Shown: positions 3,464 to 53,502 of the stretch, in pieces
How the letters are laid out: each line of letters begins with the position of its first letter
How positions within the stretch are numbered: position 1 is the first letter of the stretch
Source of the DNA: Pelomyxa schiedti
Taxonomy: Eukaryota; Protista; Evosea
DNA: 53,673 nt
Direction: 5' to 3'
Assembly (NCBI GenBank): GCA_020536535.1
Contig: JAHLWZ010000753.1
Location: forward strand, 1 to 53,673
Notes under the pieces: model-generated
Databases searched by the model: none
What the model was told of the DNA's origin: nothing
Seen by the model: only the letters and a program-made list of their open reading frames with translations
Position numbers and translations under genes: made by a program

Positions 3464-4589
3464 TCACTCCATGTCAACAAGTGGAGCACACCCACTGTAG
3501 GGGTGGTATGGAAACCCAGGCACAAGGTAATGGCAGTGCACAGCAAAACTAATAAGCTCCGCCTCTGCATAGATACACTCTTTCAGATTGTGGAGGTTCA
3601 CATCACTGCAGTACTTTCTCAGATTCTCCTTTATCTGAGAGAAGCAAGTTTCAATCCAGGCCATATCAGGTGAGGCAACAGGCCTAAGAAGAGTCAGCAA
3701 ATAATCAACAAAAAGGAGAATACCTTCGAACAAGCTTGTGTCCTTCCTGTTCTACCAGCTCTCTAATGGACACATCCAGATGTGCCCTATGGTTATCCAT
3801 TAGACATACCCGTTTTTTCCCGCGAATTTGCGGAAGCAACAACTTCTTAAGCCAGCAATAAAATACATTGCTGTCCATAGTCCCTGGGAAGACAAAAGGT
3901 GCAATTGCACCCACATTCACATCTGCGGCCATCAGTAAATTGAGGTGTTTGGAATATGGTGGCTGAAACATGTAAGCTACAATAGGGTAGTAGGAAGTCT
4001 AACTAATTCAACACGAACAGCTTGCCCTGGTAGTGCATATCCTGCTCTTCTCCCATCATCCCATTTCATCCATATCAATCATACATTCTACTGCCACATT
4101 ACAGATACTGTAGGACAGTTAAATGGAAATATTGAAAGAAAAATACAACCCTTGAGGTGTGTCATACAGAGAATTCATCCACCATGAAACTTGTTGGCCC
4201 TACTTATTGATAAGCATGTTGACACAAGAGAACACTAGAAACAAACTTCCTGGTGGTGTCCAATCCGTTTCTTTATATGTGTGCGATATCTAAGGCCTAG
4301 TAGTTTGGTGGCTTATAAGTAGCTTAGCTTATATCAACACAACTATAGAAAAAAATTAATACAAACTGCACTACAAGCTCTTAGTTACCTGATGTGTGTG
4401 CCTGGGTAGCTGTCCATTAGGAAATTTGCCAGTTCCTGTCGTCTTGAGGTTGGGTTCTCCAGTATGAAGTCTTTCAAGCTCACTCTCATCTCGGCGGTGA
4501 TCTTGGTAGGTCTTCCATGTCGGCACATGTCACAGTGGTCCAGGGACATGGCCCTGTGTCGGTACACCGTCGCAAGTGACACACCTTCC
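3464..4589 (-). pseudogene. DD34E transposase, 5'-truncated
   Basis: Motifs GRPTKIT, CLMDNHRAH and SPDMAWIETCFSQIK. Has deletions relative to the 52257-53502 copy. Confidence 0.85.
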
Positions 4590-4820
4590 CGGTGGCTCAA
4601 TAATTCAAAAAAGTGGAATTTCTGAGACAATCTTCAAGACTTGATTGAGTTTTTTTGCCCCGAAACTTGTGTGCAGGGTTTTAGAGCTGGGATGCCTCTG
4701 TTCGGACAAAAAACAGGCCCATTGTGGTGTCGAAGGACAGTACTATCGGTTGTACTGTCTCGAAGCGTACTCTAAATGCGTTTTGCCTCGTCGAGGAACC
4801 ACGCAAATTAAAAAAAAAAT

Positions 4821-4878
4821 TGGTTTGGCCAGAATCGAACCCCGTCTGTTGGGGTAAAAGCGGCGACTACAACAAACC
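4821..4878 (-). pseudogene. Degenerate tRNA-like fragment (tRNA-Glu-like 3' half) followed by oligo-T
   Basis: Minus strand GGTTTG..CGCCGCTTTTACC..GGGGTTCGATTCTGGCCAAACCA then a T-run. Contains a B-box GGTTCGATTC and GGTTTG/CAAACC end pairing, but it is only ~58 nt with no intact D-arm. Confidence 0.3.
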
Positions 4879-5261
4879 CCAGTAATTGTAACTGTATCTT
4901 TATCCAAGGTAGTCTCTTCACAAACACTGTGTTCAGCACTGCGTTTTTTGGGCAGCTGGTCTGGCAGCTTTGTTGCCATCTCCCGCAGAAAGCCAGAAAG
5001 CACTGCGAACAAGAAAACGATCTGCTAACATCTGCTGGCGCAGCTAGCATAAATGCCAGCTGCGCCAGAACGCGCTACAAGCGCGGGAACATGCTAAAAG
5101 CGTTTTTTGGGGTAAGTCTAATCGATCTTTGTTTTCTTTTTTTCTAACAGGCCCACGATTGTATGGCTGTTTGTGACTGAGACGTCAAAACATCAAAAAA
5201 ACTTTTCATTTTGTTTGGTGCCAAAAATTAGTAATGGGAGAAGGAGAAAAAAACAAGGATG

Positions 5262-8200
5262 TCAAAGCTTGGATGATGAAGCGTTTGCAGCAACACCAGC
5301 CACTGTGGGTGTCTTGAAGAACTGTTCAAGGGTCACATTAAGCCCAGCAAGCAACATCTCAGATGTTATCCTTGTCATGTGCATCGAATTGCCACCAGCT
5401 TCAAAGAAGTTGGTTTTCACACCACCATTGAACCCAAAGACCTTCTTCCAGAGGGCAAACACAACCTTCTCCTTCTCAGTGGATGGGGGTGTGTGGTCTT
5501 CAGCACCTGAACTGTGGACTGCTGCAGGTTTTGACAGGGCATTGCGTTGGACCTTTCCAGAGGCACTCAGGGGCAGGTTTTGCATCAGCACAATTGAAGT
5601 GGGAACCATGTAACGCGGAAGCCTGTCTGAAAGGAAAGCCACAAGGTCATCTGCCATGCCTTGAATCCGAATGACCGCACCCGTTCCAACTTTCTCGAAA
5701 CCCTCATCAAGTATTTCCTCAGTGGGCACAACATAAGCAGCAAGGAACTTGTCACCGGGAGTGTCCTCCCTGAGGGTGACAACAGCATCTTTCACGAATG
5801 GGTTCGAGTGCAGGCACTCTTCAATCTCACCGAGCTCTATTCTCAGGCCGCGGAGCTTGACCTGGAAGTCGGCCCTTCCAACGAATGCGAGCTCACCGTT
5901 CGGAAGGAACCTGCCAATGTCACCGGTGCGGTAAAGCTTCCCTTGGCACGGCAGTGCAGGGACAGACACGAAGTGTTTCGAGTTGAGTTCTTCCCTGTTC
6001 ATGTATCCCATCCCCACAGAGGTGCCTCCGATGAACATCTCCCCGACGACACCCACGGGAACGGGTTGCTGATTCCTGTCGAGCACGAACACCTTCACGT
6101 TGTCGATCGGTCTGCCAAGGGGAACGACGTGACTGGAAGAGTAGAGTGTGTTCCTTTGTGCAAGCGCACTGAGGCAGTCAAAAGAGGTTGTTCCGCACGA
6201 GGCTTCTGACGGACCATACACGTTGATGAGCTGAACTTTATCCCCAAAAGTGTCGGTGAATCTGGCAACATCCTCCCACAGAAGTGCATCCCCTCCTGAA
6301 TAAACAAGCTTCAACGAGGAGGTCATCTGTTTGACGTCGGGGTGCGTTCGAGCAACGCTGATGAATTCCTTCAGAACCGCGGGCACAAAGAAGATCCAAG
6401 TGATTCGTTCGGAGAACACGAGCTGCAACAGAGCTTCAGGATCCATGTCAGCACCAAGAGGGCACAGTATACCACAGGAACCAACAATGAGAGTGAAGAA
6501 AATGTCAGCCACAGAGGCATCAAAGTAAAAAGGTGACTTGACGAGGAAGCGCGATTCTGACGTGAGTCCAAACTTCGATGTGAGCCACAGACCGTGGTTG
6601 ACAGCACCAATGTGGTGGTTCACAGCCAACTTTGGCTTCCCAGTGGATCCAGAAGTGAGGATTGCATAAATCGGTTCCTGGCCAGTCTTGATCACGTGTG
6701 GTGGGTTGCTGGTCGGCATGTTCTCCCAGAGGTTGGAATCTTCCAGGACTGAGATGGCGCGAGGGGACCCACTTGGAAGGCACTTGGAGAGTGATCCCTT
6801 CGAAAGGAGGACGAAAGGAGGTTGGGAGTCGGCGAAGACGCTCGAGAGGCGGTCGCTGGGAGACATGGGATCGAGGGGGATGTAAGCAGAACCCGCCTTG
6901 AGAACAGCGTAAATCGCAACATACATCTCGATTGACCTCTCGGCAATGATGGGGACGAAGACACCAGGACCGACCTTGCCGGTTGCGATCAGGTGGTGCG
7001 CAAGTTTGTTGGCCCTGCTGTTCAGCTGCTCGTACGTCACCGTTGTCTCCAGGAACTTGAGTGCTGGTGCACTCGGCCTCTCTGCCGCATTCGCTTCGAA
7101 GAGGTGGTGCACTGCCACTCCGCTTCCGCTGTGATCCTTCTCCGTACAGTTCCACTCCTCCAGCTGCATCGTGGCCTCTGCTTGTGGAACGACAGTCAAC
7201 TCTGAGAGTTTGAGATCAGGTGAAGTTACAATGCACTGACAGAGAACTTCCATGCTTTTGGCCATACGAGCAATGGTGGAGGCATCGAAAATATCCTTGG
7301 CGAACTCCCAGTACATTTCAACATCGCCTCCGTTTGGCAACGCTCTTGCAAACAGTGTGAGGTCAAGCTTTGCAGTACCGTGTTCGCGCTCCAAAAGCTG
7401 TATTTCTTCCACTCGTTGCACGCCGTTCATCTTGAATCCCGAGTCGAACATCTGCCACTCGTCCATCACGAACATTGCTTGGACGAGCGGCTGCACCTCC
7501 AGGCTCCTCTCCACGTGAACGTGCTCGACAACCCACTCGAACGGCACATCCTGCGCAACCTGGGCTGCGAGCATCTTCCGCTTCACCTGCTCCAGGGTGG
7601 TTGTGAATGCCTGGCTCTCGTCCACGCGCAGCCTGATGGCAAGGGTGTTTACGAAAAACCCAATGATTCCCTCCACTCCGCCATAGTGCCTGTTCGCCGT
7701 AGGTGTGCCGACGACGATATCCCCATGCACCGGCGATGATGCCGAGCCATCATCGGCTTGTTGCGCGGCGCACTGCTGCCAGTTTGGGGAATACCGGTGC
7801 AAGAGAACCTGGAACACCGCAAGCAACGTGACGAAGGGCGTTGCATTGTGCCTGCGACCAAGGTCGACGAGTGCGGCGAACAGGGAGGATGGGAGGCGGG
7901 AGAAATGGGCACCGAGGGCGTAAGTCCTGGCCTGGGTCCTGGGGCGGTCCAGAGGGAGGTCACAAACTTGTTTGACATCTTTGAGCTCCTTCTTCCAGTA
8001 AGTGATCTGCTTCTCTGCTTCGGGGTCCTGCATGAACTTCTGTTGCCACAGCGTGAAATCCGCATACTGCAACGGTAGGGGCGGAAGAAGAGCTGTCGAA
8101 GTTGATGTGTGTGGGGGGACACTGTCGTTGTACAAGTGAGCAAGCTCTTTGATGAAAACAGACAAGGACCACCCATCTGAAACGATGTGGTGCATGGAAA

Positions 8201-11200
8201 TGAGGAGGCCGTGGGTGTTTGTCCCGAGGTGGCAGAGCACAAGTCTGACAAGCGGTCCTCTCTGAAGGTCGAAGGCTTTGCCAAGCTCTTGCACGACCAT
8301 TTTTGATAACAATCCGTCTTCTTCCTCTCTGTCTCCTGGGAGCTCAACTGTTGTCATCTCAAAAGCAGTTGCTGCTTCCTCCTCTGGTAAAATGCTTTGG
8401 TAGGCACTTGATGGGCCATCAATGAACCTTGTCCTCAAAGACTCGTGGCGCCTCACGAGGCACAAGAGTGCATGGCGCACCAGCTTCTCGTCCACAGTGC
8501 CCTGAAGCTTCATGCCCAGGCCCATGTTGTACTGCGTCAATCCAGGTTTGAGCTTGTCGAGGAAGAACAACCTGCTCTGAGCAAATGAAAGTGGAACTTC
8601 TGGCGGCCGGGGGGCCACTGCCGCCGTGATCAAAAACTTCTTGTCAGAATCAGCAATGTGCGCCCTTTCCTGCACAAGTGCCGCAATGCCTGCAATTGTT
8701 CGGCCTTCGAAGAAGTCCCTCAGCACAATTCCTGGCACCCCTCTCCTGCGTGCAACCGCCAATGCTCTCATGGATTGAATAGAGTTTCCGCCGGCATCAA
8801 AGAAATCGGTGTGTTTGCGCAAGCGAGACGCAAAATTGCTGCTGGGAGCACTTTCTTTCAGACACTCCTGAATCAGCTTCTCCAAAGCAGACATGTTCGA
8901 GTCCTCAGCTGCATCGGCACTGGCGTTGCTTTCACAAGAGCGGTAACCTGTTGCGTCGCTGGCAGCTGGTTTGGGCAATGCCTTTCTGTTCGTCTTCCCT
9001 GCTGAAGTCAAAGGGAACTGTGACAAAACGGTGAATGTGCTGGGTACCATGTACGAGGGCAATTTGGACTTCAGGAAACCAGAAAGTGTAACCGGGATAT
9101 TTGGCAAGCACGGTGCGTTGGTGGCAGTCCCTGCCATCGTCAAGGTCAGGTACGCAGCAAGGAACTTGTCACCGGGAGTGTCCTCCCTGAGGGTGACAAC
9201 AGCATCTTTCACGAATGGGTTCGAGTGCAGGCACTCTTCAATCTCACCGAGCTCTATTCTCAGGCCGCGGAGCTTGACCTGGAAGTCGGCCCTTCCAACG
9301 AATGCGAGCTCACCGTTCGGAAGGAACCTGCCAATGTCACCGGTGCGGTAAAGCTTCCCTTGGCACGGCAGTGCAGGGACAGACACGAAGTGTTTCGAGT
9401 TGAGTTCTTCCCTGTTCATGTATCCCATCCCCACAGAGGTGCCTCCGATGAACATCTCCCCGACGACACCCACGGGAACGGGTTGCTGATTCCTGTCGAG
9501 CACGAACACCTTCACGTTGTCGATCGGTCTGCCAAGGGGAACGACGTGACTGGAAGAGTAGAGTGTGTTCCTTTGTGCAAGCGCACTGAGGCAGTCAAAA
9601 GAGGTTGTTCCGCACGAGGCTTCTGACGGACCATACACGTTGATGAGCTGAACTTTATCCCCAAAAGTGTCGGTGAATCTGGCAACATCCTCCCACAGAA
9701 GTGCATCCCCTCCTGAATAAACAAGCTTCAACGAGGAGGTCATCTGTTTGACGTCGGGGTGCGTTCGAGCAACGCTGATGAATTCCTTCAGAACCGCGGG
9801 CACAAAGAAGATCCAAGTGATTCGTTCGGAGAACACGAGCTGCAACAGAGCTTCAGGATCCATGTCAGCACCAAGAGGGCACAGTATACCACAGGAACCA
9901 ACAATGAGAGTGAAGAAAATGTCAGCCACAGAGGCATCAAAGTAAAAAGGTGACTTGACGAGGAAGCGCGATTCTGACGTGAGTCCAAACTTCGATGTGA
10001 GCCACAGACCGTGGTTGACAGCACCAATGTGGTGGTTCACAGCCAACTTTGGCTTCCCAGTGGATCCAGAAGTGAGGATTGCATAAATCGGTTCCTGGCC
10101 AGTCTTGATCACGTGTGGTGGGTTGCTGGTCGGCATGTTCTCCCAGAGGTTGGAATCTTCCAGGACTGAGATGGCGCGAGGGGACCCACTTGGAAGGCAC
10201 TTGGAGAGTGATCCCTTCGAAAGGAGGACGAAAGGAGGTTGGGAGTCGGCGAAGACGCTCGAGAGGCGGTCGCTGGGAGACATGGGATCGAGGGGGATGT
10301 AAGCAGAACCCGCCTTGAGAACAGCGTAAATCGCAACATACATCTCGATTGACCTCTCGGCAATGATGGGGACGAAGACACCAGGACCGACCTTGCCGGT
10401 TGCGATCAGGTGGTGCGCAAGTTTGTTGGCCCTGCTGTTCAGCTGCTCGTACGTCACCGTTGTCTCCAGGAACTTGAGTGCTGGTGCACTCGGCCTCTCT
10501 GCCGCATTCGCTTCGAAGAGGTGGTGCACTGCCACTCCGCTTCCGCTGTGATCCTTCTCCGTACAGTTCCACTTCTCCAGTTGGTGTCTCTCAAGCACTG
10601 AAATGGGGAACATGTTTGAGATGCTTTGTGATGGGACCTTTGTAACTGCTTTCATCAGTGCCTCAATGTTGAGAGCCATTCTTTGGATGGTGGACTGGTC
10701 AAAGACGTCTCTGGCAAACTCAAACTCCATGTGAAGCTCCTTGTTGACAACGTAACAATGCAGTGTCAAGTCAAACTTGGTGACTGGAGCCTGCACACCA
10801 CTCAATTGATGTGCTGACTGGATTCCTTCCAAGGAGAAATTGTTTGGATTGTCGAAGTCCCAGTCATCCATGACGAACATTACTTGCACCAGTGGCTGTA
10901 TGTTGAGCTTGCGTACGACTCCAATTGCTTCAACAACCCAGTCGAAGGGAATGTCTTGTGCTCCTTGTGCTGCCAAAACCTTTTCTTTGACCTGTGTCAG
11001 CACAGACCCAAAGTCTTTGTACTCTGGGATCCTGAGCCTGATGGCAAGGGTGTTGACAAAGAATCCAATGAGAGAATCCACTCCGGGGTAGTGTCGGTTC
11101 GCTGTTGGAATCCCCGCAACGACGTCACATTCCGCATCTTCTTCTGATGGTGGTGATTGAAAACGTTGGGAATGGAGATGAAGCAGAAGCAGGAACACAG

Positions 11201-14200
11201 ACAGAACTGTCATGAATGGGGTCGCATCAGAGCAAGAGCGGCCAAGTGAACACAATTCTCCAAAGGAAGCAGACGAAATAACATGTGTGTGGGTACCTGC
11301 TGCATACGTGCGGTGTTGTGCTCTGGGCCTGTCAAGCGGAAGATCGCACACCTCGGGTGCACCTTCCAACTCTTTCTTCCAGTAAGATAGCTGCACGTCT
11401 TTCAACTCGGGTGACTCTAACAGCGCTCTTTGCCAGAGGGAAAAGTCTGCATACTGGAAGGGAAGTGCTGGCAGAGGTGACGGCGCCATGGATTTGTCCC
11501 CTGTTGAAAGTGCCAACTCTCTGTTGTAGTTGTAGGAAATTTCTTTTAGGAAAGCAACGTAAGACCACCCATCGACAATGATGTGGTGAGCATTCACAAA
11601 CAAGATGGTCACTTCCTTGGACACTCTGAAAAGAGCCAATCTCAACAGAGGGCCAGTTTGGAGGTTGAAAGGTCTGAGAACCTCCTTTTTGCAACCCTCC
11701 ATGATCCACTCTTCCTTCTTTTGTTGTTCATCGTCTTGAAGGCCAGGGTAAGCAAACTCAGAGATTTCAAACCCTTGCTGGGCCTCTTTGGGTGGCAGAA
11801 TCAGCTGGTGTGGGTCGTCATCTCCGGAAACGACGAACCGTGTCCGAAGGGATTCGTGCCTCTGCACAATGGCGAGCGTTGCTTGTTGGAGAAGAGGAGC
11901 GAGAGGGGCAGACCCTTGCAGCTCGAGAGCGCCCCAAGTGCTGTACTGCACAGAGTTAGGTTCGAGTTGGTCAATGAAGAAGAGCCGCAACTGTGAGTAC
12001 GAAAGTGGAACTTTGGGGGGCCTCTGCATTGCATGTGGAGCTTGAATAGCCACGGCAGTTCTTAATGAGATGTGCTCTGTCATGGTACGAATCGTTCTCC
12101 ACTTGAACAAGTCCTGGATTGTCACCTTCCAGCCTCTCTCATTTGCACAAGCGATAAACTTGATCGCTTTGACCGAATCTCCCCCAGCTTCAAAAAAGTC
12201 TTCATCCAGTGTCTGTGGTGGAGCAGTGATGGCCTCACACCACGACTCGTAGACAACACGTTGCTCTGGTGACAGGAACTCTTTGTTGAGTTGTTGTGGT
12301 TGTTGCACATTTCCTCCCACTGATGATGCTGTCTTTGGTTTGGGACCAACAAAACCTGTCGTGCAGTTGACAATGGATGTTTTCAAGGAAAGCCCAGCGC
12401 AAATCATGTTTGTCAAAGATCCCACTCCTAATGGTCCAAAGTCGAACAGCTTCACCTCGGTGCATCCACCCTTGAGTGAAATTGCAGCCCTGTTGTTGTG
12501 TGTTTCAGGTGACGAAAGGGATGAGTGGGTTCTTACTTGACACAGTCTGGCCAATTGAAAGAAAGCTCCAGGCCATCTCTCACGATACGTGTAAAGATAC
12601 TTATGCTGTCTTCCTAAGTGTATTGCTTAGAGACCAATTTAAAAAATCCAAGTTGAGAAGGCGAACATACTTGAGATAGATCAGTCAACTTGCTTGAGCT
12701 GATCACTGAAGGATTGTTTGGCACTGGAGCCAACACTTTGCCAAAGCCACCAGACTTGAGATTGCGCAGTAATTTATCAGTGGGGCTGTGGGTGTAAAAC
12801 TTATTGTGAAGTGGAAAGACAACAGGTAAGGGCGAAGTCTGATCAGGCAGAGCGGATTTAAGTTTTGCTATGCTTGTTGGGTGTCCTGTGTGCACATCAG
12901 AAAATTATTTTCTCATACTCCAACTAACCAGAGATTTCTGTTAAATCGGGACCCATGTTGATGCAGGCATGAAGTGGAGCATTTGGGCATTCAGTGTTGA
13001 TGGATTGGAGTGCCCTCTGAACGACTTCTTCCGGGGCTGTTACTGTGGCAAGGCACGAGTTGGTGAAGACATCTTTCCCCCACTGTCTGATATACTCATC
13101 AATAAATTCAGCAAAGCACAACAGCTGACAAAAAGAAATCAACGCTGAAATGGCTTGCAACTGCTTGAGAGAATCTGGAAGAAAAATGTGGAATCAGACT
13201 TAAAAAAAGGAAGACAGCCACACTGACCTGCTCTGCTCAAGACAACGCATGAGGTCTGCCCTGAAGAATACCCAAGCAAAACGTCAAATGATCTGAGGTA
13301 AGTCATAAATCGATTGTTTCCGTCAAGATCATAATCGTCATTGCCAGTTGACAGTGCGGAAGCAATGAAGCATGCAACGTTGTAGAAAGTACACAGAGAA
13401 GCAAGAAACAAGCAGGAAAGTACTTCATTGCTGGGGCAGCTTGATTCATTCTGCACCCTGGTAAAAAAAGGGAGAAGGTTGAGTGAGATTGTAGTAAAAA
13501 AGATTTGCGAAAGTGAAAATACCATGAATACAAATCAACAGAACCCCCCGATCGGAAAAATTGATCCAGAACTGGGTGTTGGGAGCGGAGTTTGTCAAGT
13601 GTATCACGGTGTATGGCCGCCAACGCGCACAGTGAGGATGATGCTCCATAGAGCCACTTGTCCACCAAGGGGAACATGTTGCACAGCATCCTCAACTTGC
13701 CAATCAACCATGCTCTGATGTCTGGATCGGGGCTGAAACCACCAACTACTGCAATGCGCTTGGTTCTTTGGCACTGAGGTTCACCAAGAGGTTGAGTCAC
13801 AGATGGTGTGGTGGACACTGGAGTATCTTGTGAGGTTGTGACTTCTGGTTTTTGTGAGGGTGCTGTCAGATTTACGGGTTGTGGCTCAGCTGCTGATGAC
13901 ACTTTCGAATGTTCGAGAACGGCTTTTTCCATGGGGGTGCGCTTTGGAATGTTGGGTGGGATGGTGACGGTGGTCCCTTTTGGCTCTTCTTGTTCACCTC
14001 TCAGGGTACTGATTTCCGAGGCCAGCTCCCCAATTGATATGCTGCTCAGTAATTTCAGCGGTGAAATGTTAACACCAAGCTCAGACATTATCCATGTCCG
14101 CAAACTCGTTGCCACAAGGCTCCCGATGCCTTGCGATGCCAATACCATGTCTTCTCCAATGGACTGCTCCTCAATGCCCAGGGTCTTTGCCACACGCGCT

Positions 14201-17200
14201 TTCAGGAGGGAAAATACGGAAATTTCTCCAGCAACTGCCTTGTGTGCATTTTCATCAACGATATGATTTTCAGAAAACCTGGCAAGAGAAAGGGTGGTTT
14301 TGAAGCCCATGCAAAACAGGCTATCGTCAATGGAGAAGAGTGAAACTGGGGAATCCGATTCTTTCCTTGAAAGAATAGCATAAAGGCAATCAAGAGAAAC
14401 TGTTGCAGAAACCTGGCTTATGCCATTGGCAGCAAGTGACACTGCTGGCAAGGGAGATGTGGTCAAAACTCCTGTTTCTCCGATCGCACCCCACTGAACA
14501 GAAAGGGCAGGCAATCCAAGGTGATGCCTGTACTGAACGAATCTGTCCATAAAATAGTTTCCCGCAACGTACGATGTTTGACCATCTATGCCAAGCAGAG
14601 AGGAGATTGAGGAAAACATCACGAAGTGCTTGACTGGATGTGAGAGTGTGGCCTTGTGCAAATGCCATGCACCAATGAGTTTTGGGAAACAAACACGTGT
14701 GAACTTCTCCAAGGTGAGGTTGTAGAGAGAGCAATCCCCATATAAAGTAGCACTGTGGTACACTCCTTCCACTGGTGGCAATTCGGCCTCAATCACCTTG
14801 AACGCTGCGACAACTGAATCAAAGCTGCACACGTCGACGGAGAGGCAGAGAACTTTGCACCCGTGGCATTTCAACCAGTCGATCGAGTGTTTTTCAAAAC
14901 TGGTCTTTGGTCTCCCGTCACGGGATGCAAGGGCAAAGTTCCGTGCACCGTGGTAAAACAACCACTTGGCAACCAAAAATCCAAAGCCATTCAATCCACC
15001 AGAAACGAAGTAAGACGCATTCGCACTGCACAACCAACTGCTGCCATAGGCGCTTGGGAGCAGTTCCAACTTCTCAACTGGTCGTTTCATGGAGATGGAT
15101 ACTGCTCCTCTCTGATCTGGCTCAGAGAGCTGATCCAATGCTTCTTGGATGTGCGCAAGATCATACGATTGTACTGGAATGACGCCAGCCAAGGCCGATA
15201 CAACTTTCACGATTTCAGGGCCAAATTCATCAAATACCATGTCATCTGGAATGCTTGAGAGTTCGACAACTTGAATGGACTGGTTTTCAGTCAGTAGACA
15301 TCTGGGAAGCTGTTGTCCAGGAACGAGTTGAAGGAACCTTCCATTTCTTGCCAGGGTTTGAAGGGACTCGTCAGCAAGCATTCCCCCAAATGCATTCACA
15401 ACAATATCCACACCACGACCGCAAGTTATTTCGTTGATCTTGTCATAAAACTTTGGGTCATTCCCAGCAATGACATTTTCCAATCCAATCACTTCCCTGA
15501 GGTACTGCGCCTCATCCTCAGAAGAGGCTGTGGCCAACAATCGCAGCCCAAGGGACTTGGCAAGGTGAACAACAGCCAGACCCACTCCGCACGAAGCGGA
15601 ATGAACCAAAATACACTCCCCTTTGCAAGCCCTCGCACAGTGGACAAGCGAGTAAACAGCAGTCCACGCAGGAATCCCCAAAGCGGAAGCTTCTTCCAAC
15701 GAGACATTTGTTGGCTTGGGAAACACCGAATGGCAGTTGCAAATCAGGTGCGAGCACAGAGCTCCCAATCGGGGCATCACGATGACTTCATCCCCAGGCT
15801 TCACGTGAGTGACTGCACTTCCAACACGCTTCACCACACCGGATCCTTCCAATCCAAGCTTCCCATACTTGTGCCATTGCCCTGTGGCCGTTTCCACGTC
15901 GAGCAGTCCCTTGGAGATGAGGAAGTCCTTTGAATTCAAGCCGACGTGCTTCATCTCTGTGCAAACTTCGGTTGGGGCCAGGGCGCAGCCAACATTTATC
16001 CTCACAAAGCGAGGCGGGGACCCGGCGGAATCAAACTGGACCTCCCACCCTTCCTCCACTTGAACTGGTTCGGGTTGCCAATCAAGTCGAGAGATTGATT
16101 CCTTGTAGTCACCGATGTTCACTCGCACGCAGAACCGTCGGTTGTTGCTGATGCAAACTTCGGTTTCGAGTGGATTGTTCCACCCATGGAGTGCTTCTTG
16201 AACGATGTGCGTTTTCCAAGTGCTTTCCTCGTCACAAGGGTCGAGGTCGATCACCTTCAGGTTATGTGCCGTTTCTGTGGTGGCAACTCGGGCCACTCCT
16301 CCCAAAGAGAACAAAGAAACTGCTGGTGTGTGGCAACGAGCCATCCTGGGATCGTAGACTCCCGTTGTCACGATGAGCATCCGGCAGTGCAAATCAACTT
16401 CGCTCAGGGCCGTGGACAAGTAAGCGATACATAACGCACTTTCAACTGAAACTCGTTTGAGTTCTTCGTCAACAGGTTCCGCTTTTGTGTAGTGTTCTGT
16501 GGGCCACGCGTTGACAACCTCACAAGCGGTGGGTTTCCCAATCGATTTTATCAACTGAACCCAATGGTCTTTGTTCAAGGGATCGATGCAAATGGTACTT
16601 CCGTCAGCTGTTGTTTCGTACTTCGGGCTTTGCCTGACAGAGATCGCCTTCTCAAAACGAGATCTCAGGGAGGAAAGGAGAGACTCACAAAATTCATTCC
16701 CACAAGACAGAAAGATCAAAACTCCTTGCTTATTCCTGGCTTCGGCTTCATTCTCATCAGGAGAACTCTCAATTGGCACAGCGAGAGGTAGCTCAATCCA
16801 CTTTTCCATGCCCAGTGATACGTTTGGGATTTTATTTGAAACGGCACTCAGCCTCAGATTCTTGATGGAAATCAGTGGCTTCCCAGTCATATCCATCAAG
16901 ACCGCGTCGCCAATCATGGACTTCTGAGGAACAAAATGTGTTATTTTGGTGTGGCACCAAAACGATGAAAATGTGCGGGCTGCTGTTGTTGGTTTTTGTG
17001 CAAGAAACGATGTGAAGGCGAGTTCGATCCCTTTGGAAGCACCTGTGTCAGAGACAACAGCCGAAAAACCTGAGCTGTGCAAACGCTTGATCCATTCATC
17101 CCTGGGAATGCACACGTGATTCCTGTCTGTTGGGTCGTTTTCCCACCATTGATCAAACAAGCCAAATACGAAGTTGAAGAACACGGACTCTTTGTGGGTT

Positions 17201-20200
17201 GGCTCGGTGAGAAGCAGCACACCACCAGGAGACAGAGCATCGTAAATTCTGGAGAGCACATCTCCCAACACTGGCGCAACATGAACAACAGAAAAAGCTA
17301 TCATCACGTCCACGTCTCGCAGATCCTCGGGGAATGGCTGAGAGATATCAAGTGCACTGCATTGGACGAATGGGAGGGGAGCGAACATCTCTTTGGCTTT
17401 GCTGACGAAGAGGGGCGAGACATCTGTGAATATGTACTCCACCTCGCATCCACGATCGTGGGCTTCTTGGCAAATGGGAAGAAGCTGCCTGGTAGCTCCG
17501 CCAGCGCCCCCGCCGATTTCCAGAATCCTGATTCTCTTTCCACGTTGCAAGAGCTGTCCAAAAACTGGGAGAGACGCTTTGGTGAGGTTGCATGTCACAG
17601 ACTCGTTGTAGAATCTGGAAAGTTTGTCGTCTTCCAAAAGAGAAGTCGAATTGCTGAAAAGGTCGACCAGTTGCCTACCCACAGTGTGGACCAACTCTGC
17701 TTCAATGTTCATCACCTTGAAGGGATACAAAAGCACTTCAGATGTTTGGCTATCCCCATGGAGACTTTGATGCCAACTGATATATTTTCTCTTGCTTCGA
17801 CTCCAATCTGTGGTGCTTGAAGCAATGGCCTGACAGAACTGGGCAGAGTAATGCTTGCACAGCTGCACCAACTGCGCATTTTCTTCAAGAGCCAAATGCA
17901 AGCGCTCCTCCTCAATCACGTTGTGTTCCGGAATGAACCTGCTCTCCTTGAGGTCCACGCAAAAATCTTCTTTGCTTCCTCCCTCCGTTCCAAGTGGAGC
18001 AAGTATCTCAAGATAACCGAGAGACGAGGGAAGGAGAATGCTCAAACCACGAAGGTCGGGGAGACCCAACAGCCCACCGATGATGCACTGAAAGCACGCG
18101 TCCAACACTGCCGGATGAACTGCTGAGTTTTTTGCGACTGAGGCAAGCGCGGCGTTGCTGAATTTAATTTGACCAAGTGCTTCATTGAAGTTGGTGTTTT
18201 CAACAAAAATCCTGGATATTGGAGCAAACAGCGATTTGTAATTCAACCCCATCTCCGCGAAAGACTTGTATATCACTGAGTGCCCTTTCATCAGTTTGCA
18301 TATTGCTTTGAGTGTGTCGATGTTTGTTTCGGGCAAAGCTATTGGTTTGGGTTCGGCTATCAATTCTATTGTGCACGAGGAACGCTTTGAAAGGGTTTTT
18401 TCCTGCTCGGCTTTCGTGTGCACTTCGAATCCCATTTGTTTCGATGTTGGGTGATAGTCTGTGACAACGCATTTGAACTCCACGTACGAGTCGGGGGATA
18501 GCACGACAGGACTGTGAAACATCATTTTTGTCACGGAAACTTGGTTTGTTCTCCAGATCTCCCTGGCAGCCAGTGTTGCCAACTCTGCATAAAATGCACC
18601 GGGAATCACAATGTCCTCTCCAGTGCTTATCCTGTGCTCAGAGAGCCAGGGGTACAGGTTCAGGGCAACCACGTTGCTCCAAGATGGAACCGGGCTATCA
18701 TCACGCAACCCCAAGAGGCTGTGTGTGGCATTCAGCCCACGTTTGTATGTACTGAAGGACTTTGGTTCCATTATCCGAACGGTGTTTTGCCACACCGGCG
18801 CGCTGGGTATCTTGACCCACCTCGACTTGTCCTCTTCCGCGTAAGGAGCGAGTGGGTGCTTGCTGACGTTGTGCCAGTTCAGGCTGGAGATGCCGTTCAC
18901 GTACAGAGTGCCAAGGTTCGACAGCATCGTCAAACGCTCGGGCTTGTTTCGCTCGATGGAGTGCACAATGACCGTCGGGTTCTTTGGCGTTGATGGTGCG
19001 GTGGTCGAAAGGTACACGGAAAGGACTGGGTGGTTGGCAAGCTCCACAAACACGTTGAACTTCTCCTCGAGAGCGCAGAGAACCGAAAGGTAAAACAGGA
19101 CGCTGCACCTCACGTTCTTCCACCAGTATTCTGGCCCTGGCGGTTCCGTCATAAATTTGCCCAACACCGTGGAGATTATCGGGATCTTTGGATGCGGTGC
19201 AGGGTTGAGGCCTTGAAGCTCCTGAATCAGCTGCTCTTTGATCTGGTCTGTTTGGTAACTGTGGAACGCGTTTTGTACGTGCAGGAACCTTGCGAACTTC
19301 CCCTGCGATTTAAGTTTTTGCTCCAAAGAAGCCAGTGTAGCAGGGTCCCCTGCTAAAACAACCGAATCGGCACTGTTTACGGAGGCGATGTCCACCCCAG
19401 TCACGTTGGAGATCAGTTCCGTTGCGTCCGAGAACGACATGCTGATGGCAAGCATCCTCCCTTTCCCGCTCAACGCCTGTTGCAGGCGAGACCTCACGCT
19501 GATGACGAGTACGCCTTCTTCCAACGTCAGGTAGCCGCTCACTACTGCTGCTGCCACTTCTCCGACGCTGTGTCCGACGACGGCATCGGGAACAATTCCC
19601 CAATGCTGCCACACTGCGTTCAAGCCGATCTGGACAGCAAAGATCAACACTTGGGCGTACTGTGTCTGGTTCACGTGCGAGTCCACCTCGGCTTTGTGAA
19701 GTTCCTCTATCACCGACCACCCCATCACTCTTCTCCCAATGCTGTCGACTTGTGTAATCGCGTCCCGAAATATCACGTCTTCAGAGAAGAGCTGTCTTCC
19801 CATTGCGAACCACTGAGGCCCCTGACCAGAAAAAACGAACAATGTCTTGGAGTTCTTCGTTGAGAGAAGTTGAGATGCCCCAACCTTCCATTTTGCATCC
19901 ACTTCTGCTTCAGCTTTGGGATTTTGTATGAAACTGTTCAAGGCGCTAGATATGTCCTGTGAAGTTTGCCCCAGAACTGCGAGGCGCTGGGAATAATGAT
20001 TCGTGCGTTTTCCAGCACTGTAAACGATCTCTGTCCATCCACTTTTGCTCACTGACAGAAAGTCGACCCACCTTTGCGCGGATGCTGCAAGTGCAGCACT
20101 GGTGTGTGCAGACACCGGCAGAAAGTAGAATGGTTTTCCACCAGAAGCCATGTCGGAGGGGATCGGCAGCGATTCTACAACAAGGCCATGATGGACAGGT

Positions 20201-21650
20201 GTTTGATGCTCCTCAACGACCACTGTTGCGTTGCTGCCTCCAAATCCAAATGAATTGGCAACTGCAATCTTCTTGTTTGTGGTGATCTTGCTCCACTGTT
20301 CCCCTTTCCATGAGACAGAAAGGCTTCCAAAGTTGATGTGTGGATCAACAGGTACAACGAGTTGGGGAAAAACTTCATCATGCTAAAAGTGGGTCAATTT
20401 TGGGTTTTTTTTTTTTTATTTTAATGCAAACCTGCATCATCAGAATGATTTTGGTGAGACTTGCCAACCCAGCACACGCCTCAGTGTGACCAATGTTTGC
20501 TTTCACTGAACCTATGAAACAAGGACCTCTTGCTCCCGTAGCTTCCTCACTGAAAACTCTCTTCAGAGAGTCTACCTCAATCGGATCACCCACTGGTGTT
20601 CCAGTGCCATGAGCCTCGACATATGAAACGTTGGCAGGGTCCACTTGTGCCAATGAAAGAGCTTGCTGCAGAACAGAGACTTGACCACTGCACTTAGGTC
20701 GATTAATGAACTGTTTGCTGCCGTCATGGTTGGTGGCTGTGCCAGATATTACACAGTAGATATGATCACCATTGGCAATAGCATCTGGTAAAGGCTACAT
20801 TTTGAAAAAAAACCAAAATAGGAGAGAAGAACACAGTGGGTTGGAAACGTCTTATTAAGTTGAAACATACCTTTAAAAAGAACGCAGAGGTGCCTTCGGC
20901 CCTGACATATCCATCCGCGTTGGAACCAAATGTGTGGCACTTGCCTGAGGAACTTGTCATTCCTGCTCGAGAAACAGAAAGCGAAAACTGTGGCAGCAGC
21001 ACTAAGTTCGAAGCAGCAACCAACGCCGAGGCACAGTCTCCGGCCCTGAGGCTCGAGCACGCAAAATGCAAAGCGACGAGGGAGCCACTGCAGGCAGTGT
21101 CGACGGTTACACTCGGTCCCTTGAAATCAAAAAACCACGAGAGACGGTTGCACAGCATGGACAGAGCCACTCCGTTGGCAGTGTAAGGAGACACGTCGGG
21201 CTCCGTCATAAGTGCGATGTTTTGCCAATCGATTCCGAAGCTGGCAACGAAAACGCCGGTCGAGTTGTCACTCCCGCCGTGAGGAAGGAGGTCTCGGTCG
21301 GCCACGCTCGTTGGGAATGTCTCGCCGGCGTCAGCCAAAGCTTCGCAAGAGACTTGCAGAAGTTGGTGCTGCAAGGGGCCAAGGAATGAGGCCTCGCGAG
21401 GCAGTAAACCGAAGAACGCGGCGTCACAGTGAGTGGCAGGATCACTAGTGCCCGCGAATGGTGTTTTAATCTTGCCGAGAGCACAGTGGACTTCTGTATT
21501 GAACCTGTGAGATGGAACTTTTTGGATGGCGTCGGAACAGGTGTGCAAGAGGTCATAGAAGTCGTCTATGTTTTTCGCAGTGGGAAATCTGCAACTTGTG
21601 CCCGTGACTGCAACCAAGAACCTCTCCGTGCTGCTGGAGTGTCGGCTCAT
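5262..21650 (-). CDS. Hybrid PKS-NRPS megasynthase, ~5,332 aa: KS-AT-DH(cMT)-psiKR-ER-KR-ACP-AT(SAT/FAS-like)-T-C-A-T-C-A-T, C-terminal SKL
   Basis: Exons 21650-20871, 20794-20432, 20382-13523, 13457-13228, 13174-12929, 12885-12671, 12613-12537 and 12489-5262 (sum 15,999 nt); all introns GT..AG and phase-compatible. Motifs: KS DTACSGS / EAHGTGT / NIGHTE / NSFGFGG; AT GHSVG, NAFHS; DH EHRISTGEDIVIP, LDACFQ; MT LEIGGGAGG; ER HSASCGVG; KR SGGLNGFG, GQTSYVAGN; ACP GIGSL; second AT GYSSG; T GGDS, GGNS, GGNS; C HHIIVDG, HHIVSDG; A TSGSTGKPK, YGPSE, YRTGD, QVKLRGLRIELGEIE. Confidence 0.9.
5737..7156. repeat. Intragenic duplication copy (A-core of NRPS module 2)
   Basis: Matches 9154-10573 at offset 3417. 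No mismatch seen, and the alternative-frame ORFs are identical in both copies. Confidence 0.95.
9154..10573. repeat. Intragenic duplication copy (A-core of NRPS module 1)
   Basis: Matches 5737-7156. Confidence 0.95.
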
Positions 21651-21941
21651 CTTTGTTCCCTGTGTACTTTCTTCTTAAAATTCTTCTTTGTCCAATGTGC
21701 TTAAGCACCCTTTTCAGGTTTTAGGAGAATGTTATGAGTGCTCTGATATCAGCCAGGAATAGCGAAGTTGTTCATCATTGAAAAGCATCAAGAAGGGTGG
21801 GAAATTTCATTCCTTGCGTATGAATCCACAGTTGTTTGTCACCAGCATTCCAAGAATTACGTCAAAAGTAATACACATTGGACACCCTTTTTTTATCCTC
21901 TTTGTTTTTCCTCCCATTTTACACCACCACCGGCCAACCAA
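21651..21941. promoter_or_regulatory. Putative bidirectional promoter between the two PKS genes
   Basis: 291-bp AT-richer spacer between divergent ATGs at 21650 (-) and 21942 (+). Positional inference only. Confidence 0.45.
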
Positions 21942-24900
21942 ATGGGCAACACCCCACCACAGCCGGGCATCACCAACATTGCAAATCTCCCAGGAGTGGT
22001 CCTACCCCCCAAATTGAACCCGGCCCCACTTCCGACTACCACCGCAATCGCTTCGCCAGACGTGTCGGAACCCACCACAGCCGCCTCCGCTGTATCCGCT
22101 GTGCCCCCGGGGCTCTCCAACGTTGAGAGGGGCCTCGCTACCGTCGGCGATCTCACGCTGCCGCTACCGATCGTGCCTTTCGCCCCCGTCGCCGTGATCG
22201 GCGCCGCCGTGAAGCTGCCCCAGATCAATGGGTGGGACGACGCGTGGACCGTGTTTTCCCAGGGCCTCGACGTGATGACTCGCTGGGACTCGACCGACCC
22301 GCTGCTGGTAGGCTCTCGCGGCTTCATCGAGACGGCCGAGGAGTACGACTACAAGTTCCTGGGCAGCAAGCACCCCCGCATGGAGGACCCGCAGGCGCTC
22401 CTGATCAAGGAGCTGGTGTGGAACGCGCTCGAGGACTCTGGCTACTGCCCCTCGATGTTGGCCACGATGCCAGGCCGCGTCGGCTTATACGGCGACCTCA
22501 ATCCGTTCTACTCGTACGAAATGATCTCCCACGTGATGAAGGGGTTTGACGACATCTCCGTCATGACGCCGCAACTGCTCTTCACTTCGTCCTACACCGT
22601 TCCCTTCAAGATCCTGGTTGGCGTAGCCAACGGCATTCGCGCCCACGGGCCAGTCCTTCACATTTCCAGCGCTTGCAGCACTTCGGCTGCGTGCATGTTG
22701 GCTGCTTGCGACGCCCTGCATTCCCGGCGCATCGAGATTGGCATTGCCACCGCCGCTACTGTGGGACACCCTCGTCGTCCCATAACTGGTTACAGCAAGG
22801 AATCCAAGGGGCTTTACAGCGTCGATGGCTTCGTCAGGCCCTTTGAAGCCAGGGCCTCGGGCTTTGTTCCGTCAGAGGGAGGTGCTGTGCTGATATTGAA
22901 GACCGTGGAGGCTGCCTCGCGGGACAACGACGTGATACACGCCGTGATTGATGGGGTGGGGGTTTGCTCCGATCCGTCCGTCCTGCCCTCGCCCGACGCA
23001 ATCAGCGCCACTCTGGTTGCAAAGTGCATAGTTGAGGCTATGAGCACCGCCGGGGTGAAGAGCAGCGACGAGATTGGCTACGTGGAGTGCCACGGGTCTG
23101 CCACGACAGTCGGAGACTTTTCTGAGATAGTAGCACTCCGGGCGGCATTGCAACATCCAACAAAGTCGAGGTTCTGCGCTATTGGTGGAAGTAAAGCCAA
23201 CGTTGGTCACTTGGGTGGGTGCCCTGGCCTCGTGTCAGTTATGAAGGCAGCCCTCATTCTCAAGTACAACTTCATCCCACCTTTGGCAAACTTTGAGAAC
23301 CCTAGCCCTATCACAGACCACATACTCAAGCAGCCAGGGTGCCCTGTGTTCCTACCAAAGGTTGGACACACCCCTGCGACCCCAATTACCAAAATTGGAG
23401 TTCAGTGTTCTGGCCCTGGAGGTGGTTACCACTGGATCCTGTCCAAACCTGCTCCAATGCCCGCATTTGTGGAATCCACTGTTTCACGCCGGACTTTCAT
23501 TTTCTGCACCTCAGCCAAGACTTCCACTGCAAATGTCACACTATCTGAAAACACGACCAAGCTAATCTGTGACAAGCTTCAACGGCCAGATGGAATCGAA
23601 TTTGCACTTAATTCAGAGTGGACTCTGCAAACACGCAGGGAATACTTCCTTGAAAGGAGCTCTGTGGTTGTAACTCTTTCCTTGGGTGGTATGAATTTCG
23701 TTGCTCATAGAAATTTATGTAACTCACCCTATCTCTCACTGGCTATAGATTTCCCACAAGCTGTTGTTCGTGCCTTGGCTCCTGTTAGGAATAGTGTCGC
23801 CAACCAAAACGAGGATGTGCGGGTTGCCTTTGTCTTCTCTGGATTTGGGGTTTGCAGCCGGCAAGCAGCTAAAGAGCTGTACCATCAGTATCCTGTTTAT
23901 AGGGAAACTTTTGATCGGTGCAGCAAGTACATACAAGAACTTACGCAAGGAGAACGTAATATCGTGTTGTCAGCAGATGATCTTGCTATTGATTCAGCCG
24001 AAGACACTTATTTCATCGCCCTCGCCTTTGTGACACTTCAGTTGTCCATTTCGCAGCTTCTACTTTCATGGGGCATCGAGCCAACTCAAGGAATGGTTTG
24101 CCACAGCCTTGGAGAATATGCCTGTGCCGTGGCCTCTGGTATGCTGACCATCGAAGAGTGCCTGAAACTCACAAAGCTTCGTTTTGATCTTCTTACAAAG
24201 CTGCCAACGGTTGCCGCTGTAGTTGTGTCAATGGTGGTTGTGAAGAGAGTGTGCGACTTGGTGGCAGAGATCAACAAATTGGACGGTGCGGCTTCTTCAG
24301 ATGACCAAATTGAAGTGACGGTGATGAATAGTCCGACAACTTGCATGGTTTTAGGGCCCCATGTCAAGGTTGATGCATTACTTCTGAAGCTGAAAGGAAC
24401 CCCCTGCAAGACTACAACGTTTGCACCCACTCCCTCGCACTCGAAAAAGGTGAGCCCTGTTCTGCAGCAATTCCGCGACGCTTTCGTCGGAATGAACATC
24501 CCGGTGCGCTCAGGAAAGTACAGATATATCAGTACTCTGAATGCGGACTGGGGGAAGCTTGAGGACTTGTCTTCAGCGGACCATTTCTGTGAAGCTTTGT
24601 GCCATCCTGTCCTCTTCCACCAATCCATGCAAAAACTATTCACCTCTTGGTTGGCCGAGAGTGCTGCCGCGCAAGATTCCCAGAAAGTGAGGAAGATGAT
24701 TATATTTGAAATCGGAGCAAGCTTATCAACCCATATTCATGATATTGCATATGCTGAATGCGGAGAACTTCCCAGCGACCAAGCACCCGCCAGTGTGTTG
24801 GCACTTCCCCTCTTCCTGCATCAGCGCAACAGCACGCTCAACGCTGCCCAACACTTGTGTGTGCAACTTGGAACTTCCTGGGTGAACGGAGCAAAGTTTA

Positions 24901-25361
24901 GCTGGACAAAGTATTCTGAATCCGCGGGAGGGGCCAGGCGCCATGTGGTTCCGTTGTGCCTGTATCCCTACGAGAGAGTAAAAACCACCTTTGACGTACC
25001 CACCGAGCCACTGTCGAGGGAGGCATTCTTCGAGAAGCTTATGGAAATGCCGCAGCCCGCAAGTGCGCAAGAAACGGCGCCATCAACAACTGAAATCCCA
25101 ACAGTGCTGGGCTCCACTCTCACGCCCAAAGAGGTTGGAGTAATCGCAGAAAAGTGGACGCTTTTCGTTCACACCCCACCCAAGACGGAGGGAGACAACT
25201 TCTTCGAATTTGGAGCAACCAGCCTGACGGCGATGCAAATGATTTCGTCAATCAACAGGGTTCTTGGGTTAACTTTCCAGTCCGTAACCTTCACGGCCAC
25301 AACACCCACTTTTGGAAACCTGGTCCGCGCTTACTCCCAACACAAGGTCTCTCGCACCTGA
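21942..25361 (+). CDS. Single-module type I PKS (KS-AT-carrier protein), ~1,139 aa, intronless
   Basis: KS triad SSACSTS, VECHGSAT, KANVGHLG; AT AFVFSGFG, VCHSLGEY, TPSHS; carrier NFFEFGATSLTAMQM. Pro-rich N-terminal extension. First ATG is 21942 (the ORF-track start is a TTG). Confidence 0.88.
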   Translation: MGNTPPQPGITNIANLPGVVLPPKLNPAPLPTTTAIASPDVSEPTTAASAVSAVPPGLSNVERGLATVGDLTLPLPIVPFAPVAVIGAAVKLPQINGWDDAWTVFSQGLDVMTRWDSTDPLLVGSRGFIETAEEYDYKFLGSKHPRMEDPQALLIKELVWNALEDSGYCPSMLATMPGRVGLYGDLNPFYSYEMISHVMKGFDDISVMTPQLLFTSSYTVPFKILVGVANGIRAHGPVLHISSACSTSAACMLAACDALHSRRIEIGIATAATVGHPRRPITGYSKESKGLYSVDGFVRPFEARASGFVPSEGGAVLILKTVEAASRDNDVIHAVIDGVGVCSDPSVLPSPDAISATLVAKCIVEAMSTAGVKSSDEIGYVECHGSATTVGDFSEIVALRAALQHPTKSRFCAIGGSKANVGHLGGCPGLVSVMKAALILKYNFIPPLANFENPSPITDHILKQPGCPVFLPKVGHTPATPITKIGVQCSGPGGGYHWILSKPAPMPAFVESTVSRRTFIFCTSAKTSTANVTLSENTTKLICDKLQRPDGIEFALNSEWTLQTRREYFLERSSVVVTLSLGGMNFVAHRNLCNSPYLSLAIDFPQAVVRALAPVRNSVANQNEDVRVAFVFSGFGVCSRQAAKELYHQYPVYRETFDRCSKYIQELTQGERNIVLSADDLAIDSAEDTYFIALAFVTLQLSISQLLLSWGIEPTQGMVCHSLGEYACAVASGMLTIEECLKLTKLRFDLLTKLPTVAAVVVSMVVVKRVCDLVAEINKLDGAASSDDQIEVTVMNSPTTCMVLGPHVKVDALLLKLKGTPCKTTTFAPTPSHSKKVSPVLQQFRDAFVGMNIPVRSGKYRYISTLNADWGKLEDLSSADHFCEALCHPVLFHQSMQKLFTSWLAESAAAQDSQKVRKMIIFEIGASLSTHIHDIAYAECGELPSDQAPASVLALPLFLHQRNSTLNAAQHLCVQLGTSWVNGAKFSWTKYSESAGGARRHVVPLCLYPYERVKTTFDVPTEPLSREAFFEKLMEMPQPASAQETAPSTTEIPTVLGSTLTPKEVGVIAEKWTLFVHTPPKTEGDNFFEFGATSLTAMQMISSINRVLGLTFQSVTFTATTPTFGNLVRAYSQHKVSRT

Positions 25362-52256: not shown

Positions 52257-53502
52257 TCACTCCATATCAACAAGTGGAGCACACCCACTGTAGGGGTGGT
52301 ATGGAAACCCAGGCACAAGGTAATGGCAGTGCGCAGCAAAACTACATACCAAAGGGCCTGTAATAAGCTCCGCCTCTGCATAGATACACTCTTTAAGATT
52401 GTGGGGGTTCACATCACTGCAGTACTTTCTCAGATTCTCCTTTATCTGAGAAAAGCAAGTTTCAATCCAGGCCATATCAGGTGAGGCAACAGGCCTAAGA
52501 AGAGTCAGTAAATAATCAACAAAAAGGAGAATACCTTCGAACAAGCTTGTGTCCTTCCCGTTCTACCAGCTCTCTAATGGACACATCCAGATGTGCCCGA
52601 TGGTTATCCATTAGACATACCCGTTTTTTGCCGCGAATTTGCGGAAGCAACAACTTCTTAAGCCAGCAATAAAATACATTCCTATCCATAGTCCCTGGGA
52701 AGACAAAAGGTGCAATTGCACCCACATTCACATCTGCGGCCATCAGTAAATTGAGGTGTTTGGAATATGGTGGCTGAAACATGTAAGCTACAATAGGGTA
52801 GTAGGAAGTCAAACTAATTCAACACGAACAGCTTGCCCTGGTAGTGCATATCCTGCTCTTCTCTGTATATCGTCCATGGAGCATCCCATTTCATCCATAT
52901 CAATCATACATTCTACTGCCACATTACAGATACTGCAGGACAGTTACATGGAAATATTGAAAGAAAAATACAACCCTTGAGGTGTGTCATACAGAGAATT
53001 CATCCACCATAAAACTCGTTGGCCCTACTTATTGATTAGCATGTTGACACACAAGAGAGCACTGGAAACAAACTTCCTGGTGGTGTCCAATCCGTTTCTT
53101 TGTATGTGTGCGATATCTAAGGCCTAGTAGTTTGGTGGCTCTACTTATATCAACACAACTATAGAAAAAATTAATACAAACTGCACTACAAGCTCTTAAT
53201 TACCTGATGTGTGTGCCTGGGTAGCTGTCCATTAGGAAATTTGCCAGTTCCTGTCGTCTTGAGGTTGGGTTCTCCAGTACGAAGTCTTTCAAGCTTGCTC
53301 TCATCTCGGTGGTGATCTTGGTAGGTCTTCCATGTCAGCGCATGTCGCAGTGGTCCAGGGACATGGCCCTGTGTCGGTACACTGTCGCAAGTGACACACC
53401 TTCCTCGGCGGCAACCACATGCGCAGTTTCGTTGTGTGAGCGTTCTGTCAAACGCCGGAACCTGTCATCAGCACTCACCCGGCAAACACCCTCCCGTGGC
53501 AT
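52257..53502 (-). pseudogene. DD34E transposase with introns and one nonsense codon
   Basis: HTH-like GVSLATVYR, GRPTKIT; first Asp in IDMDEMG. Removing intron 52534-52495 gives MDNHRAH..KLVRRPVASPDMAWIE, with exactly 34 residues between D and E. TGA at 53335-53337 where the other copy has CGA. Confidence 0.9.

Follow-up and report, generated by a model that had tools for sequence, protein, structure and literature searches.

The closest described parallels for a biosynthetic enzyme whose peroxisomal placement depends on a peroxisomal targeting signal (PTS) are fungal, namely PclA and PenDE/IAT of penicillin formation and SidI, SidH and SidF of Aspergillus. These are small ligases and transferases, whereas the enzymes shown there to be peroxisomal do not include the non-ribosomal peptide synthetases (NRPSs) of these pathways. 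Direct localization of the aflatoxin synthase PksA was unsuccessful, and the authors who had predicted a peroxisomal synthase in a dinoflagellate themselves considered this prediction unfounded. A type I polyketide synthase (PKS) that likewise ends in Ser-Lys-Leu (SKL) has been engineered in Pichia pastoris (PksCT-SKL; PMC3847973); its tag is artificial, it has 2,169 aa, it yielded no product, and its import is not reported to have been shown. In the literature searched, which consisted largely of papers available without subscription, no natural peroxisomal PKS or NRPS was found. Regarding the domain architecture, fungal highly reducing PKS-NRPS hybrids share the order KS-AT-DH-MT-ER-KR-ACP fused to C-A-T with the synthase described here, Pelo_9594 of Pelomyxa schiedti. 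Unlike them, Pelo_9594 has an amoebozoan host, an AT-like insert, an extra carrier and two NRPS modules with identical A cores, and it lacks a terminal release domain.

The gene lies in the window, i.e., the whole analysed stretch of 53,673 nt, which belongs to a P. schiedti assembly of 52.37 Mb in 5,337 contigs (features in Table 1). Its splice model, checked exon by exon via the coordinates, consists of eight exons (21650-20871, 20794-20432, 20382-13523, 13457-13228, 13174-12929, 12885-12671, 12613-12537 and 12489-5262), separated by seven introns of 43-76 nt, all with GT-AG borders and consistent phases, and contains one stop, at the end. The predicted product of 5,332 aa (about 583 kDa) agrees with the first-pass annotation, which had put the enzyme above 500 kDa. 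Pfam matches per ORF gave the order KS-AT-DH-MT-ER-KR-ACP-AT-like-T-C-A-T-C-A-T, with no release domain at the end. The KS, AT and ACP domains stand in one frame with C, A and T domains, as supported by Pfam, the exon phases and the fused sister protein P0271, which identifies the enzyme as a type I PKS-NRPS hybrid. The NRPS half (window 5262-12407, P0001) is a separate 2,381-aa database entry from NCBI sources, whereas it is fused in the published table; the in-phase introns conserved in both this gene and its sister favour one continuous PKS-NRPS gene. At 100% identity, the A core occurs twice in the assembly, both times within Pelo_9594.

Beyond the 3' end of the gene, a dispersed, MITE-like repeat with dozens of genome copies starts about 135 nt past the stop (window about 4590-5125) and contains a 16-nt hairpin (5035-5068). 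A 198-nt stretch at 4400-4596 recurs with 95% identity at 53215-53412, close to the other end of this contig.

Table 1. Features of the synthase gene and its surroundings (positions in the window)
Feature	Position	Strand	Basis
Alignable 3' UTR stretch, ~53-nt offset to the UTR of the sister	5202..5253	-	shuffle p values (see text)
Ser-Lys-Leu-stop, canonical PTS1 tripeptide	5262..5273	-	TCC AAG CTT TGA; two runs agree; Table S3 of PMC8887013
Whole gene Pelo_9594, highly reducing PKS fused to two-module NRPS	5262..21650	-	intron borders, phases, domains, N-terminus match
Free tail ASSSKL after carrier helix IV	5265..5282	-	AlphaFold model; codon comparison with sister
Terminal thiolation (PCP) domain, without thioesterase or reductase downstream	5286..5462	-	PF00550
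Second adenylation core	5732..7156	-	identical to first over 474 aa / about 1,420 nt
Second condensation domain	7167..8600	-	PF00668
Middle thiolation domain	8673..8822	-	PF00550
First adenylation core	9151..10573	-	identical to second adenylation core
First condensation domain	10578..12011	-	PF00668
Carrier domain at start of NRPS half	12069..12257	-	PF00550
Acyltransferase-like insert, interrupted by five introns	12400..13760	-	intron positions shared with sister; PF16073 (SAT) in sister P0271
Head-to-head neighbour PKS (KS-AT-ACP), ending in KVSRT, without PTS1	21768..25361	+	domains, ORF end

The last exon closes with TCC AAG CTT TGA (5273-5262, minus strand), and its ORF (5262-12554) ends in VAANASSSKL, so the SKL terminus noticed at first reading is genuine. 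The stop is crossed by contigs from two public runs, X1 (5093-6402) and X2 (5093-5766), with zero letter differences, both runs possibly being the source data of the assembly itself; this identity excludes an assembly slip as the origin of the terminus. RNA contigs, examined for the 3' part, cover 5321-6442 and further parts of the last exon and end 48 nt short of SKL, leaving the stop uncovered. Since the frame and that of the sister gene align unbroken as far as the lysine, a spliced alternative C-terminus is unlikely. The protein end thus conforms to the PTS1 pattern [SAC][KRH][LM] at the genomic level, the RNA coverage stopping before the stop codon. In the structure modelled by AlphaFold for the terminal carrier (alignment of 62 rows; mean pLDDT 84), helix IV stops at the Asn and the six residues ASSSKL are free, which confirms the short tail described right after the final carrier and, together with the published predictor score of 7.84, characterizes the upstream context of the signal. 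A fusion of this tail to GFP would almost surely give a positive peroxisomal signal without deciding the fate of the full-length synthase, because SKL routinely directs small reporters to peroxisomes.

The SKL prediction on this synthase is already in print and is therefore no new sighting: Table S3 of Záhonová et al. 2022 (PMC8887013) lists Pelo_9594, with an N-terminus identical to that of the present gene model, as 'Non-ribosomal peptide synthetase', PTS1 SKL, 7.841, Targeted. For the PTS1 predictor check proposed at the outset, this is the published call. In the text of that paper, the tests cover only myo-IDH and D-LDH, and the synthase is unmentioned. From residue frequencies, SKL is expected at about 4.6e-4 per protein, i.e., about 9 times among the 19,876 proteins against 16 listed, so random SKL ends are common in this proteome. 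For one of an assumed 20-60 megasynthases, the probability of a chance SKL is 0.7-2.1%, and that of any accepted motif 4-11%. By our own tally, the 16 SKL rows divide into this synthase, eight soluble enzymes and seven proteins that are unlikely as cargo (an F-box protein, two ankyrin proteins, a phosphodiesterase, a GAP, MSH2 and one unknown), and among the 62 PTS1 rows about 39 belong to regulatory, nuclear or unknown proteins. Since soluble enzymes make up half of the SKL rows, genuine cargo is enriched among proteins with this motif. In Entamoeba, the organelle proteome contained only 6 of 56 PTS1 predictions. No other PKS or NRPS is present in Table S3.

The closest paralogue, located on contigs C151 and C2062, shares with the synthase the domain order and, in the insert, the positions of the introns; it is 72-76% identical, and its end, VAANASSSKSS, lacks a PTS1. 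The ends of four other carrier-terminated NRPSs in this genome are also devoid of PTS1, QAP and SNT being the ends read among these paralogues, so the conservation expected of a functional signal was not found among close homologues. In the last module, the synonymous divergence between the synthase and its sister is about 0.82 and the non-synonymous about 0.12 (0.52 in the A-T linker). The SSSK codons carry three changes, all synonymous, with a probability of no amino-acid change of 0.003 under neutrality, 0.017 if the rate of the linker is assumed and 0.36 with that of the domain. The 3' UTRs of the two genes can be aligned with an offset of ~53 nt (shuffle p of 0.004, 0.006, 0.018 and 0.094 across four scoring schemes), and the extra stretch of ~53 nt in the sister ends in TTT TGA, in register with the CTT TGA of the SKL gene. 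Judging by this comparison, a single indel just 3' of the lysine codon could separate the two ends, with either an ancestral SK(L/F) end lost in the sister or a gain born by deletion in the present copy. A short near-repeat at both indel edges fits loss and gain alike in this comparison without outgroup. An intron within the extra stretch of the sister was rejected since the stretch holds no AG, and a plain one-base frameshift was rejected since no stop would return after the leucine.

The sister gene itself is split in the assembly, running from the end of C151 via C2062 back to the start of C151 (C151:1-1892, C151:82477-94964). At both ends of C151, 1,360 nt are identical, and C2062 overlaps both, forming a cycle of ~97 kb in the assembly graph; this may reflect an element that is circular, a tandem duplication that was collapsed or an effect of scaffolding. 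The A cores (window 5732-7156 and 9151-10573; C151:1-1425 and 93605-94964) are identical within each gene and 80% identical between the genes, which points to repeated independent homogenization by gene conversion or re-duplication.

Word searches with the terminal module and the KR-ACP region recovered paralogues from P. schiedti and, beyond these, only distant synthases, most of them from bacteria, with no orthologue from another species. A metagenome scan for orthologues gave no match either, and in a large HMMER search multi-module NRPSs dominated and no orthologue was picked out; these blanks are bounded by length windows and ranking and do not prove absence. None of the 389 other matches has a PTS1-type end, a figure useful as a background control only, as the matches are mostly bacterial. 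The NRPS half shares 35-45% identity with bacterial NRPSs. Within the genome, a KS copy of the same subfamily (C151:20193-20954, minus strand; 72%) carries three TGA stops and is a pseudogene, and C291 and C171 carry more copies. P0272 (3,099 aa, 62%), a third PKS of this subfamily and probably the C291 copy, lacks NRPS modules and contains a PLP-dependent aminotransferase class I/II domain; this is likely a chain-release domain, and the PKS core likely swaps its C-terminal part. With at least 36 condensation-domain and at least 66 carrier-domain matches, P. schiedti possesses a large PKS/NRPS repertoire, for which no paper was found.

An important question is whether the organelle could receive and serve such an enzyme. 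The host does have the machinery: 13 peroxins including Pex5 are described (PMC8887013) and Pex14_N was found in the genome, in keeping with the first-pass remark that archamoebae have anaerobic peroxisomes. Cargo size is a different matter. The PEX13 pore was observed at about 52 and 70 Å and predicted at about 100 Å, the largest monomeric matrix protein has about 79 kDa, and a tetramer of about 256 kDa is, besides 9-nm gold, among the largest imported oligomers (PMC13733771, preprint). Against these values, the 583-kDa synthase monomer exceeds the largest known cargo about twofold. Reducing PKSs act as homodimers, which would bring the present synthase to about 1.2 MDa. One can conceive of a monomer entering one domain at a time, although such a passage is undescribed. 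The archamoebal peroxisome itself measures 80-440 nm.

Accessory enzymes expected for peroxisomal assembly are also missing from the predicted matrix. Among the 67 matrix proteins predicted in Table S3, there is no thioesterase, PPTase, acyl-CoA oxidase or partner PKS, and neither a matrix source of malonyl-CoA or SAM nor a release enzyme. The genome holds two PPTase matches and several thioesterase-fold matches, none of which appears in the PTS table, so the search for PTS1-bearing accessory enzymes came out negative (for the PPTase genes on C561 and the synthase ends on C171, absence of PTS1 was judged from Table S3). The lack of a PTS1 on the PPTase weighs little because this enzyme could act before import. 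A genome search for acyl-CoA oxidase gave no match, with the control equally silent. Without a release enzyme or a malonyl-CoA source, the earlier rationale, according to which peroxisomal acyl-CoAs and thioesterases would supply starters and the missing release step, falls. The predicted proteome of the organelle does include a phenylacetate-CoA ligase, a sulfotransferase and alcohol dehydrogenases (Table S3, PMC8887013), the first two being the only conceivable partners.

Overall, the tripeptide is real and a peroxisomal function is on balance unlikely. The first-pass proposal of an assembly line inside peroxisomes is partly supported: it was sound in its premises (host, Pex5, SKL, predictor), but its inference is weakened by a sister without the signal, the size and the absence of accessory enzymes from the predicted matrix. 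We lean towards a cytosolic synthase, the SKL being specific to this copy and the 583-kDa enzyme undergoing no meaningful matrix import. As deduced from the domains, the reducing PKS would make a methylated acyl chain, which the AT-like insert probably passes to the first peptide carrier; the two identical A domains would each add the same amino acid, i.e., twice, and an acyl-dipeptide-type product would be freed in trans by a separate enzyme. The SKL would function on a small reporter, yet would not bring a probably dimeric enzyme of this size into the matrix. This cytosolic location is preferred because the sister of the same architecture ends in SSSKSS, because the size is beyond known cargo, and because neither PPTase, thioesterase nor the neighbour PKS has a PTS1. 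It is further supported by the four other NRPS ends and the remainder of Table S3, by the over-calling of PTS1 lists seen in the SKL rows, in the PTS1 rows as a whole and in Entamoeba, and by the lack of a natural precedent in the literature searched. The low chance rate, the soluble enzymes among the SKL rows, the unchanged SSSK and the TTT-TGA remnant count against it.

The same observations speak for a true PTS1, by which Pex5 would import the synthase, perhaps in monomeric form and with its domains passing one by one, for assembly of the product in the anaerobic peroxisome; the signal would be either ancestral, with a single insertion behind the lysine codon having removed it from the sister, or a gain that was selected in this copy. 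We consider such import possible but doubtful. A canonical, favourably scored SKL on an unstructured tail, the full peroxin set, the synonymous-only change in SSSK with the in-register remnant in the sister, and the ligase, sulfotransferase and dehydrogenases predicted in the same organelle are all consistent with it, but the enzyme far exceeds known cargo with a tail of just six residues, the sister does without the signal, no precedent was found, Table S3 offers no malonyl-CoA or SAM source and no release enzyme, and the direction of the indel is unreadable without an outgroup.

Less probable still is that Pex5 binds the tail without passage, in a surface docking, or that import is limited to a C-terminal product, either a fragment arising by processing or the ~260-kDa protein of a separate NRPS-only transcript. 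The exposure of the SKL in the AlphaFold model, the separate database protein for the NRPS half and the RNA contigs in the 3' part, which is the part examined, would suit such an arrangement, whereas the conserved in-phase introns of both copies indicate one gene, the sister P0271 is annotated as fused, and there is no sign of an internal start or cleavage. An artefact, with SKL being a sequencing error, spliced away or misjoined across the adenylation repeats, is very improbable: the A cores have about 1,420 nt in common without a difference, no listed contig spans a whole core, and the RNA contigs end before the tripeptide, but two runs give the same letters over the stop, the sister keeps the same module order, and the fully identical A core exists only in the two copies of this gene.

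That a 583-kDa PKS-NRPS is imported by Pex5 into small anaerobic peroxisomes, while its twin became cytosolic after a single indel at the stop, is thus held with low confidence. If true, it would be the first described peroxisomal megasynthase in the literature searched and would surpass all known peroxisomal cargo in size by a wide margin; anaerobic peroxisomes would gain a biosynthetic job, and the size limit of the PEX13 pore, currently an open question, would be more than doubled. A natural control is at hand in the gene pair, whose copies end in SKL and SKSS, respectively, and are otherwise alike. If import is not real, the synthase would be a clear case of over-calling by tripeptide lists.
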